From the sequence record MW384823.1: a stretch of 64,000 nt of DNA; one strand, 5' to 3'. Position numbers and translations under genes: made by a program. The notes beneath the pieces were generated by a model. It had not been told where the DNA came from. It did not search any database and saw only the letters and a program-made list of their open reading frames with translations. Below are positions 62,174 through 64,000 of the stretch, one piece after another. How positions within the stretch are numbered: position 1 is the stretch's first letter; the number at the start of each line of letters is the position of its first letter.

Positions 62174-62818
62174 ATGACTAACTTCACCCGCGTTGAATCC
62201 CTGAAAGCTGTACTGCCGTCTGATTTCGAGTCAGCGTTCTTAGAAGCCATTGACCGCGTCGAAAACGTGGCCAGCGATTCGGTCATTCTCACCCGTTGGG
62301 TGTTGATGAACGAAGGGCGTCCTGAGAAGGTCGCTATGGCGCTTCAGGAAGGCAACAACGTAACGTTCCCCTTCTTCCTAGGGGTTACCCTTCCTGAGAT
62401 GGAAGACATCGCCAAAGCGGCTTACAGCGACGTTAAACATGTGGTCGTCTTTACCAAAGACCAACTGCCGAATGCGGAAGGCTGGCAGATGCTCACTTGC
62501 AACTACACCCCGCTGAAGAAGTTCACCACAGACCAACCGTACACCGTCACGAAGAAAGAGGGTGGTGCGCTGGCTGAGGTTACTACCGCGGCAGGTGGCG
62601 CACTGATGGTAATAGCACCGGGATGCAGTGCACTGGTATTGGGTGACGAGCAGCCGACTGACCAAGTCTGGGCGTTGGTTGAAGAACTCGCGGCGGTTTC
62701 AAATGCAGAAGGTCTGGAGTTCTCGGTGCAAGCCATGAGCCCGCAGTGGTCAATGCTGTTGGATGAGCATCCTGACTATGACCTGAACAATGTCACCTTG
62801 GCAAAAACCATCCACTAA
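62174..62818 (+). CDS. Hypothetical early protein
   Basis: GAGGA RBS before ATG 62174; monocistronic between a promoter and a terminator. Confidence 0.75.
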   Translation: MTNFTRVESLKAVLPSDFESAFLEAIDRVENVASDSVILTRWVLMNEGRPEKVAMALQEGNNVTFPFFLGVTLPEMEDIAKAAYSDVKHVVVFTKDQLPNAEGWQMLTCNYTPLKKFTTDQPYTVTKKEGGALAEVTTAAGGALMVIAPGCSALVLGDEQPTDQVWALVEELAAVSNAEGLEFSVQAMSPQWSMLLDEHPDYDLNNVTLAKTIH

Positions 62819-62824
62819 AAAACG

Positions 62825-62850
62825 GGGAGCTTCGGCTCCCTATTTTTTTT
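62825..62850 (+). terminator. Intrinsic terminator
   Basis: GGGAGC-TTCG-GCTCCC followed by TATTTTTTTT. Confidence 0.9.
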
Positions 62851-63071
62851 TGTTTTTTTGTTAACTGACGGCAATGTCCAGTTGAGAATTGTACACTTTT
62901 TAACCATGGGTCAAATTCGCTCTAAAAACGGTTCTGAGATGGTCGACCTCCTACCCAGTACACTTGGGTTCCTGATACCCCATTCGTGCAGCAGAGAATC
63001 GCACAGCGCGAAATTGGGCCGGTTGCAAATCGGTTTCCGGGGCAGGGGTCGGCTGCGCGACCGCCGATGCC

Positions 63072-63491
63072 GATCAAACGTTGGGGTGCGCTTGCGCGTT
63101 TTCAGGATCAAATTCAGGAATTCAGGGCAAACGAATCTTCGTGAGTTTGGCTGAATTTGGTTGTTTTTTAACCGCTTACTCTCCCCGGCCTTTAGCCGGG
63201 ATCGAGATCCGCTTAATTTAAAAATTTTTATTTTAAAAACAAAGACTTAGTTAGGATTATCCCCCCGATCCTGAACCCCCTCTGGGGTTCAGTTAAAAAG
63301 TCCTTTCATTATACGCGTGCACGCGCACGCCATTTCCTACAGGATCTTTTAAAAGAATTAATAATATTATTAAATATATATATCCCGTAGGGATAATATT
63401 AATAATTTAAATATATATATAAACCCTACGGGTTTTAAATAACTAACGCGCGTGATCCTTATTACGAGATCTAATCCGGGAAACGGGGATC
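63072..63491. other. Non-coding, GATC-rich, palindromic AT-rich element (candidate replication origin or cis-acting site)
   Basis: 9 GATC in 420 bp, several perfect palindromes and a duplicated TAAATATATATAT+hairpin module. Confidence 0.45.
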
Positions 63492-63524
63492 GGGGGAAAG
63501 TCGAATTACAAGTTTTCCCAGTTC

Positions 63525-63952
63525 TATGCACGACGAACCAAACGCTTGCCCGAATCATCCTCGGGCCTTTTTCGAGAATCCACGATGCGGGTTCTGGACA
63601 AAGCCAGCGGGACAGCCTAACACTTCCCAACGCGTTTCAGGTTCTGGTCAGAGACTCGGTGGTCGCCACCGACGAGACCGGTACCGTGGTAGCCCCACGG
63701 GAGACTCACCGCTTTCGGGCCGTCACCCGATACGTCATCGACGAACTTACCGTCGGTCTGCTGTGAACTCTCCCTGGGGTGTGACCAGATTTCGAATTCG
63801 GCTTGCGGCCGATAACCGTACACGGTTTAGCCCCGTGTACACCGGAGAAGTCTCCAACGGAGGATGATCCAACCATCTTGGCGGCTCGGAAAGACGAGAG
63901 GGGGGTGCCCCCACGCTGCGAAGCGCTAGGGTGTCGCTGAATGTGATTTTTT
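63525..63952 (+). ncRNA. Candidate structured non-coding RNA (~430 nt)
   Basis: TATG at 63525, about a dozen consecutive hairpins, a terminal T6 and no credible ORF. The strand is inferred. Confidence 0.45.
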
Positions 63953-64000
63953 ACAAACTTGGGTGTTCCTGTGTTCAAACCACAGCACCGGAGATAAACC

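Follow-up and report, generated by a model that had tools for sequence, protein, structure and literature searches.

What lies in the gene-free end of the genome of Erwinia phage pEa_SNUABM_43 (MW384823.1, 241,904 bp, Machinavirus)? The stretch analysed here, called the window, is 64,000 nucleotides (nt) long and corresponds to the last 64 kb of this record, with the closing 1.2 kb identical; the final base of the circular record is window position 64000. The last clear gene stops at 62818 and the remaining 1.15 kb to the record end is free of genes. The initial annotation of the window had pointed to a hairpin-dense stretch at 63525–63952 and proposed a multi-domain structured RNA of a family that it did not recognise, with a structured single-stranded DNA (ssDNA) element linked to the adjacent origin-like site as the alternative. 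Comparison with relatives shows that 63525–63940 on the + strand specifies a conserved non-coding RNA (ncRNA) with about 14 helices, which belongs to an uncatalogued family of SPN3US-like nucleus-forming jumbo phages; the + strand is the folded one and the region is not protein-coding.

Relatives of the element

BLAST matched 49 phage records, 10 of which span most of the region. The records of pEa_SNUABM_42/43 are identical to the window and the other 8 of these 10, including Huxley, Machina, Parshik, pSal-SNUABM-04, pEa_SNUABM_10 and pEa_SNUABM_6, are ~90–92% identical, while Caitlin, ChrisDB and pEa_SNUABM_9 match the region at ~70%. For Seoulvirus (pEa_SNUABM_29, SPAsTU, SPFM phages and SPN3US) and Erskinevirus (Asesino, Stratton and phiEaH2), BLAST matches covered only an AT-rich block and short anchors; direct reading of these loci gave the identical set of blocks with their order kept, in each case within a gene-free 1–1.7 kb. 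Contigs from IMG/VR and from metagenomes, among them a divergent clade (uv17, uv27, uv26 and uv22), came from an exact-pattern scan with the most conserved block, GGCTCGG-N3-5-GACGAGAGGGG; the same scan of GTDB genomes gave no bacterial member. When 80 viral loci with an HslV-like neighbour (including other contigs of >100 kb) were searched with a covariance model of the 3′ domain, only known members came back; two further matches of ~15 bits among these loci lay on the wrong strand and were taken as chance. About 24 distinct versions of the element were gathered from Machinavirus, Seoulvirus, Erskinevirus and metagenomic relatives, and as far as these searches reached the family is confined to the SPN3US-like group.

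The core of the element, from the first hairpin through a final GCUGA, measures 389–525 nt, and the window copy is among the shortest. This copy is a minimal form of ~415 nt, whereas relatives reach 590–800 nt with extra 5′ modules and inserted domains. In these, 60–400 further nt with hairpin-plus-U-run modules lie between an upstream TATGC motif and the core, and the inserts in helices P3 and P5 are bigger.

The fold is kept by compensatory changes

The elements of the RNA, numbered from the 5′ end, are the following.

63525–63940, + strand: whole RNA in its minimal form, ~415 nt; syntenic in the 49 phage records and in the IMG/VR and metagenome contigs
63548–63566, + strand: P1, GC-rich hairpin GCCCGA/UCGGGC just before a U-run; resembles an intrinsic terminator
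63566–63604, + strand: P2, long irregular hairpin in which CUUUUUCGAGAAUCC (63567–81) pairs with GGGUUCUGGACAAAG (63589–603)
63607–63633, + strand: P3, stem GCGGGA/UCCC..GC closing a conserved 12-nt loop, CAGCCUAACACU (63613–24)
63636–63642, + strand: junction UUCAGGU, found in all clades directly 5′ of P5
63644–63681, + strand: P5, closing helix CUGGUC/GACCGG around a variable insert, here UCGGUGG/CCACCGA (63656–72)
63684–63690, + strand: junction strand CCGUGGU, whose GGU (63688–90) pairs with ACC (63784–86)
63693–63779, + strand: central multi-branch domain with P6, P6a, P6b and P7
63693–704 with 63769–79, + strand: P6, CCCCA.GGGAGA/UCUCCC UGGGG; 92% of cells paired, 6 of 7 pairs changed on both sides
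Within P6, + strand: P6a, UCACCGC/GCUGUGA, read by eye only
63715–30, + strand: P6b with loop CCGUCA; a G-C pair becomes A-U in ChrisDB, pEa9 and uv14
63738–56, + strand: P7 with conserved loop AACUUAC (63744–50); 4 of 6 pairs changed on both sides
63798–63812, + strand: P8, UCGGC-UUGCG-GCCGA; 100% of cells paired, variation one-sided only (G.U to G-C)
63818–63840, + strand: P9, GUACACGG-UUUAGCC-CCGUGUAC; 4 of 7 pairs changed on both sides, loop UGUAGAAC in other clades
63844–63855, + strand: P10, GGAG-AAGU-CUCC; 89% of cells paired, CUCC alternatively able to pair with the downstream GGAG of the next feature
63859–63874, + strand: Shine-Dalgarno (SD)-like tract GGAGGaUGAUCCAACC, complementary to the 3′ tail of 16S rRNA
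63877–98, + strand: invariant block, UCUUGGCGG followed by P12
63885–63898, + strand: P12, CUCG-GAAAGA-CGAG; stem identical in 21/21 sequences, only the loop taking insertions of 1–2 nt
63901–11 with 63928–38, + strand: P13, long stem of 10 pairs enclosing P14; P13 and P14 together have 96–97% of cells paired and 9 of 14 pairs changed on both sides
63914–63925, + strand: P14, CGCU-GCGA-AGCG with a GNRA loop, inside P13
63936–63940, + strand: GCUGA, final conserved block and 3′ edge of the family, with GCUG invariant; the sequence beyond is a gene or the next promoter-like motif, depending on the phage

Three sub-alignments with explicitly stated structures were tested, A4 for the 3′ domain (19 sequences), A5 for the P2 hairpin (17) and A6 for the central domain (17). 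Overall, 88–92% of cells were paired compared with 32–59% when the partners were slid, and 32 of 69 pairs had changed on both sides, which is the covariation among relatives that the initial annotation had asked for. In the 3′ domain, 91.7% of cells were paired (35–47% slid), 14 of 38 pairs had changed on both sides (2–6 slid) and the covariation score was 0.332 (≤0.129 slid); after realignment of 21 sequences to the covariance model, the values were 92.5% and 16 of 37. For P2 we obtained 89.1% paired cells against ≤59% slid, with both-side changes in 7 of 15 pairs, and the same structure shifted by one column, which acts as a control, fell to 41%. The central domain gave 87.8% against ≤55%, and 11 of 16 pairs had changed on both sides.

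In P9, window-type copies are misaligned by one column both by MAFFT and by the covariance model, and MAFFT shifts them in the same way in P1 and P3; hence these three stems were judged from per-sequence folds. Five window-type rows score as unpaired in P9 solely through this misregister, and their own stem consists of 8 perfect pairs. The per-sequence folds showed that P1, P3 and P5 keep stems of 6–10 bp whose sequences differ from clade to clade. For P1, 15/15 homologs tested had a 6–10 bp stem at this spot, built from at least 8 different stem sequences, and the Huxley version, GCCCAG/CUGGGC, amounts to two compensated pairs. P3 keeps its YAACAC loop, and its closing stem is different in every clade. 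The closing helices of P5, 6–7 bp long, read ACUCAGU/ACUGAGU, ACUCGGU/ACCGAGU, AUCUGGC/GCCGGGU, CCUGUC/GACAGG and, in the window, CUGGUC/GACCGG in five clades; the insert that they enclose ranges from 27 to 104 nt, and the helix is interrupted in the Caitlin group. Even between the window and Huxley/pSal04, substitutions cluster as compensating pairs, such as GCCCGA/TCGGGC to GCCCAG/CTGGGC and TCGACG/CGTCGG to CCATGG/CCGTGG.

The junctions are also constrained. The GGY/RCC junction pairing holds in 100% of cells, with CG as the third pair in 9 sequences, UA in 7 and UG in 1. CCGU (63684–87) may in addition pair with GCGG (63881–84) and so tie the centre to the 3′ domain; this tentative helix is predicted by RNAalifold and is almost invariant (UG 11, CG 3, UC 2), with a U-A pair in mg28. 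In P12 the stem does not vary, so covariation is impossible there. Both pairings of the P10 region could form in uv14 (GGGA/UCCC/GGGG) and in Huxley, and since upstream GGGG/GGAG can compete for CUCC, alternative conformations may exist. No consistent register was found for a partner of the junction UUCAGGU, nor for a kissing interaction among the loops CUAACAC, AACUUAC and UGUAGAAC.

All inverted repeats listed in the initial annotation were found where it had placed them, and eight of its twelve hairpins match the conserved fold, one is specific to the window and three give way to other pairings. Among the conserved hairpins, most show compensatory change: GCCCGA/TCGGGC (63548–66), TCGGG/CCCGA (63715–30), CGACG/CGTCG (63739–55) and TCGGC/GCCGA (63798–812), together with GTACACGG/CCGTGTAC (63818–40), CTCG/CGAG (63885–98, invariant), the GNRA hairpin (63914–25) and, more weakly, AGGATG/CATCTT (63861–79). 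TCGGTGG/CCACCGA (63656–72) is present and is restricted to the window group, within the variable insert of P5. The proposed CTGG/CCAG (63594–607) is replaced by P2, in which the run of five U at 63568–72 is base-paired with A63600–02; the bases of CCGTGG/CCACGG (63684–700) form long-range pairs instead, and the G-run/C-run hairpin (63901–12) is superseded by the 10-pair stem P13.

Two properties of the data and one natural variant speak against this reading to some extent. The + strand of the 428-nt stretch has a minimum free energy of −170.8 kcal/mol compared with −153.3 ± 6.8 for dinucleotide shuffles, and the resulting z of −2.55, while better than most shuffles (2/100 were as good), is modest for the folding score that the initial annotation had suggested as a check; it is for this reason that the comparative evidence decides the case. 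The sequences share ancestry, so significance based on shuffles is inflated, and we relied on slid-partner controls because these keep the relatedness. Finally, an HNH gene splits the RNA in L016 and L026, and an uninterrupted molecule is not strictly required there. In our assessment the comparison shows that the fold is under selection, and 63525–63940 (+) is very probably a functional structured RNA.

The folded strand and the origin alternative

In the tested pairs we counted 145 G.U cells and 25 A.C cells. The reverse strand would carry about 145 mismatches at these positions, which identifies the + strand as the folded molecule, and this strand is the sense of all flanking genes. The folding z of the − strand alone is −3.10.

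This asymmetry bears on the idea of an origin-linked element, either a transcript of the adjacent AT-rich palindromic block that acts as primer or forms an R-loop or, as in the alternative of the initial annotation, an ssDNA structure in replication or packaging. The position of the element fits such a role: it lies directly 3′ of a conserved AT-rich block (63340–63440) with TCTTTTAAAAGA, CCCGTAGGG and CCCTACGGG, GATC sites are frequent around it, and many deposited records were opened at this region. However, with 145 G.U against 25 A.C cells good folding is confined to a single strand, and DNA helices tolerate G.T badly. A GNRA tetraloop, RNA-type conservation of junctions and the flanking promoter-like motifs described below also disfavour a DNA structure, and transcription would lead away from the AT-rich block. 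We consider an origin-linked element improbable.

Coding status and family membership

The deposited coding sequences (CDSs) over the region are pEaSNUABM43_00280 (68 amino acids (aa), 63617–63823, − strand) and Huxley gp277 and gp278 (L002:3126–3326 and L002:3706–4119, + strand). Taken at face value, these annotations make the region a protein-coding gene, either gp278 (137 aa, + strand) or the 68-aa product of the − strand, and in Huxley and pSal04 an open reading frame (ORF) does start at the ATG of TATG and stay open up to the TGA of GCTGA. However, the frame reaches this TGA only in those two phages. In the window it ends after 113 codons, in mg31 and mg35 after 55; several stops interrupt it in Caitlin, ChrisDB, pEa9 and uv14, and it is broken in 7 of 9 Machinavirus-type copies. 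Six indels of 1–2 nt separate the window from Huxley/pSal04 at 91% identity, predicted peptides differ via frame shifts even between nearly identical DNAs, and the substitutions are compensating pairs, not changes at third codon positions. Pfam gave no match for the ORFs over the RNA or for the 68-aa CDS of pEa43. The ‘hypothetical protein’ CDSs overlying the RNA look spurious and the chance of a coding gene appears negligible. The initial annotation, which had seen no credible ORF and had named a conserved ORF as grounds for giving up the RNA, is borne out on this point: the ORF is not conserved. A 20-codon peptide from UUG to GCUGA, present in many copies, was also rejected, with +1/+2 insertions in the GAAAGA loop and GCUGU variants breaking its frame in SPN3US, uv22, SPAsTU and uv14.

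A search of 62700–64000 against Rfam 15 (4227 models, E up to 10) gave nothing relevant in 63525–63940, the best score being 16 bits to a eukaryotic long ncRNA model with a threshold of 55. The models cover group I/II introns, tmRNA, RNase P, 6S, T-box, riboswitches and those large ornate RNAs that are in Rfam. Five relatives searched at E up to 0.5 gave downstream tRNAs only, a tRNA/tmRNA scan found none in the region, and literature searches returned no description of this RNA. The RNA fails the membership test of every catalogued family and is thus new at the family level, in line with the initial annotation, which had not recognised it; its general kind is a known one, that of large and ornate ncRNAs without an assigned function, some of which are carried by phages. 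Two likenesses, that of GGUACCGCGG to a T-box sequence and that of UCAGAGACU to the ‘R’ element of group I, were dismissed as chance, since they are not conserved and no model hit accompanies them.

Ribozymes typically have GNRA loops and a multi-branch core, and the HNH-interrupted contigs L016 and L026 hold a 169-aa HNH_3-type ORF (E = 2e-5) just 5′ of the SD-like tract, with a degenerate duplicate of the 3′ domain on its left. Both features would suit a remnant or host site of a mobile self-splicing intron or another ribozyme. Against this, the group I and group II intron models of Rfam gave no match (window, E up to 10; five relatives, E up to 0.5), exon context is missing, with neither a coding gene nor a tRNA flanking the element, and free-standing HNH genes often land in intergenic DNA of phages. 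An HNH gene alone defines no intron. Such an origin of the element seems to us highly improbable.

Ends of the RNA and the leader alternative

The RNA runs from a promoter-like motif to the GCUGA block, and a second promoter-like motif follows.

63506–63528, + strand: promoter-like motif TTAC-N15-TATG(C), at the same spacing upstream of the element in all clades
63947–63973, + strand: next promoter-like motif, TTTTTTAC-N15-TGTG, outside the RNA; a ribosome-binding site GGAGA (63990–94) and the first gene of the record follow

Late promoters of phiKZ have the form T(−3)ATG(+1), and its middle promoters carry an AT-rich motif near −24 (PMC7598289). The conserved TTAC-N15-TATGC resembles these motifs, which makes a start at or near the G of TATG (63528) a reasonable presumption, and a promoter function of the motif is what we infer. 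A sister motif, (A/T)TTTAC-N15-T(A/G)TG, occurs 3′ of the element before the first downstream genes in all relatives, on the + strand only. TTTTTTAC itself occurs only once in the window.

The initial annotation had let the element start at TATG and end at T6. The start is plausible given the conserved motif, and the boundaries as given were wrong in detail. The T6 (63947–52) belongs to the next promoter-like motif and is not conserved; it stands beside the element because this phage lost a 381-bp gene that relatives carry there. The Huxley version of this gene is gp279, 126 aa long and without a Pfam match, which comes after the RNA and before the next promoter-like motif (63941–63953 in the window versus L002:4120–4540). 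In Huxley, pSal04 and pEa9, a gene of this type (125–126 aa) begins ~20 nt past GCUGA, and a weakly related gene is placed likewise in pEa29 and SPAsTU. The window, Caitlin, ChrisDB, uv14, the SPN3US type, Erskinevirus and the uv17 clade have no gp279-like gene and keep the RNA.

This arrangement raises the possibility of a purely cis-acting 5′ leader of the downstream early operon, in which P1 with its U-run and the GGGG/CUCC/GGAG strands would form an attenuator or translational switch. In the five phages with a gp279-like or related gene (Huxley, pSal04, pEa9, pEa29 and SPAsTU), that gene has its own SD and begins 20–35 nt past GCUGA without a promoter-like motif between. A terminator scan found no canonical terminator after the element, CUCC is able to pair upstream or with the SD-like GGAG, and two or three more hairpin-plus-U-run modules lie 5′ of the core in relatives. 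However, the RNA is kept in all the phages that lack the gp279-like gene, a promoter-like motif separates it from the next gene in most phages, and its 400–800 nt, ~14 helices and many conserved junction bases far exceed the needs of any known attenuator. The U-run, moreover, is paired in P2: the terminator shape of P1 and U-run (63548–63572) is present in the window and 15/15 homologs, its U-tract is at the same time the 5′ strand of covarying P2, and the RNA continues for 370 nt. We judge a purely cis-acting leader rather unlikely.

A possible link to the ribosome

The RNA contains a conserved, single-stranded-looking block, GGAGG(N0-1)UGAUCC, which is GGAGGUGAUCC-like. The 16S rRNA of enterobacteria ends in ..GGAUCACCUCCUUA-3′ (..GGUUGGAUCACCUCCUUA-3′ opposite GGAGGaUGAUCCAACC), and the match of the window to this tail extends to CCAACC. 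In 21/21 homologs, the best duplex of the whole RNA with the 13-nt 16S tail falls at the homologous SD-like site, with ΔG from −15.1 to −21.3 kcal/mol. The variation of the tract fits an invariant partner, namely A to G at two positions opposite a 16S U, where G.U is kept, and a bulge of 0–1 nt between the halves. As an SD site for translation the tract is out of place: the sole conserved start-like codon, UUG (63878–80), is 10–14 nt off and its frame is not conserved.

Many homologs (Huxley, mg31, mg35, uv14, SPAsTU, Asesino and uv22) also have an internal, degenerate anti-SD-like strand upstream of the tract. The resulting SD/anti-SD-like helix is predicted in about half of the clades, for example GGA.GUAAUCUCC/GGAGGUUG.AUCC in mg35 and GGGUUACUCC/GGA.G.GUGAUCC in Asesino.

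We propose that rightward transcription would start from the conserved TTAC-N15-TATGC motif; the product would be a stable RNA on its own or the leading portion of an early transcript running into the gp280-like, HslV-like and tRNA-Trp genes. The GGAGGUGAUCC-like tract would then target the translation machinery. It might pair with the 3′ tail of 16S rRNA and dock or sequester 30S subunits; or it might fold on its own anti-SD-like strand and, as a mimic of the SD/anti-SD helix, capture bS21 or another platform protein, for which OLE RNA (see below) offers a precedent.

Several observations weigh against this explanation. TTAC-N15-TRTG is not enriched in the window (6 occurrences against 3.4 expected, all on the + strand, not significant), and the terminator scan places terminator-like P1 and U-run right after the presumed start. 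In this genome each strand has a site of ≤ −15 kcal/mol for the 16S tail about every 7 kb, the predicted accessibility of the SD-like tract is average, and uv17, uv27 and uv26 lack the anti-SD-like partner. The tract could also be conserved for structural or protein-binding reasons unrelated to ribosomes. Taken as a whole, a conserved ncRNA with the transcription and ribosome-directed action outlined above is the best explanation of the data, and we hold it with moderate confidence. Its functional part is more tentative: comparison of the tract with 16S rRNA suggests a ribosome-directed role, which is our best guess although we would not call it likely. Among the roles suggested by the initial annotation, a protein sponge is possible, and nothing observed here speaks for packaging or a function in the phage nucleus.

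Comparison with known RNAs

OLE RNA (‘ornate, large, extremophilic’, ~600 nt, Bacillota) resembles the phage RNA in its size, many helices and highly conserved junction nucleotides. Its P6 region mimics an SD/anti-SD duplex and has been reported to bind ribosomal protein bS21 (PMC12054373). Both RNAs thus present a hairpin with an SD-like strand facing an anti-SD-like strand, in the phage RNA in some homologs. The two differ in that no sequence or model similarity exists (no Rfam hit), and the phage RNA is phage-borne in Enterobacteria whereas OLE RNA is chromosomal in Bacillota. In addition, the strongly conserved strand of the phage RNA is the SD-like one, and its anti-SD-like partner is degenerate, or absent in some clades.

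GOLLD and ROOL are large ornate RNAs often found in prophages or phages, often beside tRNA genes. The phage RNA shares with them a length of 400–800 nt, complexity, phage encoding, a function that is not known and nearby tRNA genes. It differs in the lack of a model match, in host range and in architecture.

SD-masking leaders (RNA thermometers and the expression platforms of riboswitches) and intrinsic-terminator attenuators are similar in that GGAGG can be sequestered by an upstream CUCC, itself able to pair with GGGG/GGAG, and attenuators share the GC hairpin followed by U5 near the 5′ end. Unlike such leaders, the phage RNA has no conserved ORF after its SD-like tract, is 5–10 times larger and survives the loss of the adjacent gene. 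ColE1 RNA II and the origin transcripts of T4 or T7, which prime replication, are comparable as structured transcripts of several hundred nt by an AT-rich, origin-like block; the phage RNA is directed away from that block, and no RNase H-type or primer features were identified in it.

Large many-helix ncRNAs are rare, and new research has followed from each class so far (OLE, GOLLD, ROOL, HEARO and others). The present RNA is conserved over at least three genera of nucleus-forming jumbo phages, including the genetic model SPN3US and phages of Erwinia amylovora considered for biocontrol of fire blight, and it is placed at the head of the early gene region, beside an origin-like or promoter-rich block, with a ribosome-related sequence signature. 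Its novelty as a family, its conservation in model and biocontrol phages and this signature are the reasons why it deserves experimental follow-up. In nucleus-forming phages transcription is kept apart from translation, which poses the question of how their RNAs get to ribosomes and take them over; if our proposal were true, an abundant phage RNA contacting the 30S platform would render this question testable. It is quite doubtful on the present evidence that the RNA represents a new class of large, ornate phage RNAs in physical contact with the small ribosomal subunit, by 16S-tail pairing or SD/anti-SD mimicry, through which host ribosomes would be re-programmed or sequestered from the first minutes of infection. 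As a practical matter, several deposited genomes annotate ‘hypothetical proteins’ that look spurious across the RNA.

Variant copies and genomic setting

The copies in mg31 and mg35 (L031:1735–2139 and L035:1400–1804) are mosaics of window-type and Huxley-type segments. No stem is divided by a switch point, each being inherited as a unit with its two strands, and the mosaics indicate recombination among co-circulating Machinaviruses.

The 169-aa HNH_3-type homing endonuclease ORF (Pfam E = 2e-5) mentioned above lies inside the RNA at L026:12464–12973, and likewise in L016/L029. On its left, the insert is flanked by a hairpin with U8 behind it and by a partial, degenerate duplicate of the 3′ domain. 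The sister contigs L017 and L027 have no HNH insert, and we therefore regard the interrupted copy as a natural split variant of the RNA.

Two or three extra modules of a GC hairpin and U5-8 lie 5′ of the core in relatives, downstream of promoter-like motifs of the TATGC or TGTG type (L004:2200–2440, L010:288–620 and L011:2220–2560), and are gone from the window. A conserved CUGCUGUGUG stands in front of some of them. These modules may act as attenuators or be small RNAs in their own right.

The gene-free end of the window runs from a conserved, GC-moderate stretch through the AT-rich palindromic block (~63340–63440) into the GC-rich hairpin stretch. The GC content of the hairpin stretch is 0.56–0.59 compared with 0.38–0.39 in the AT-rich block just upstream, in agreement with the initial annotation, which had called it GC-richer. 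The repeats of the AT-rich block are the following.

63345–56: perfect palindrome TCTTTTAAAAGA
63384–92: inverted repeat CCCGTAGGG
63424–32: inverted repeat CCCTACGGG

This block (63302–63423 by BLAST) is directly 5′ of the promoter-like motif of the RNA. It is the sole part conserved in BLAST out to SPN3US (record positions 61–185) and Erskinevirus; an origin and a cluster of early promoters are both conceivable. Upstream of it, 62858–63300 comprises a further 440 nt of conserved non-coding DNA, with ~91% identity to Huxley and ~70% to Caitlin. Hairpins in this part include CCCCGGCC-TTTA-GCCGGG (~63185–63203) and CTGAACCCC-CTCT-GGGGTTCAG (~63273–63294), and GATC sites are numerous. The last gene is closed by a strong terminator-like hairpin at 62822–62850, GGGGAGC-TTCG-GCTCCC, which has A and T runs on either side and reads on both strands.

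Downstream of the RNA, the conserved genes code for a small gp280-like protein, for an HslV-like peptidase homolog and for tRNA-Trp. The tRNA-Trp gene follows the HslV-like gene, 0.6–1.2 kb 3′ of the RNA (L006:3752–3827, L007:3638–3713, L008:3492–3567 and L010:1775–1847), and in uv22 nine Rfam tRNA matches lie downstream of the RNA (L022:44–1372).

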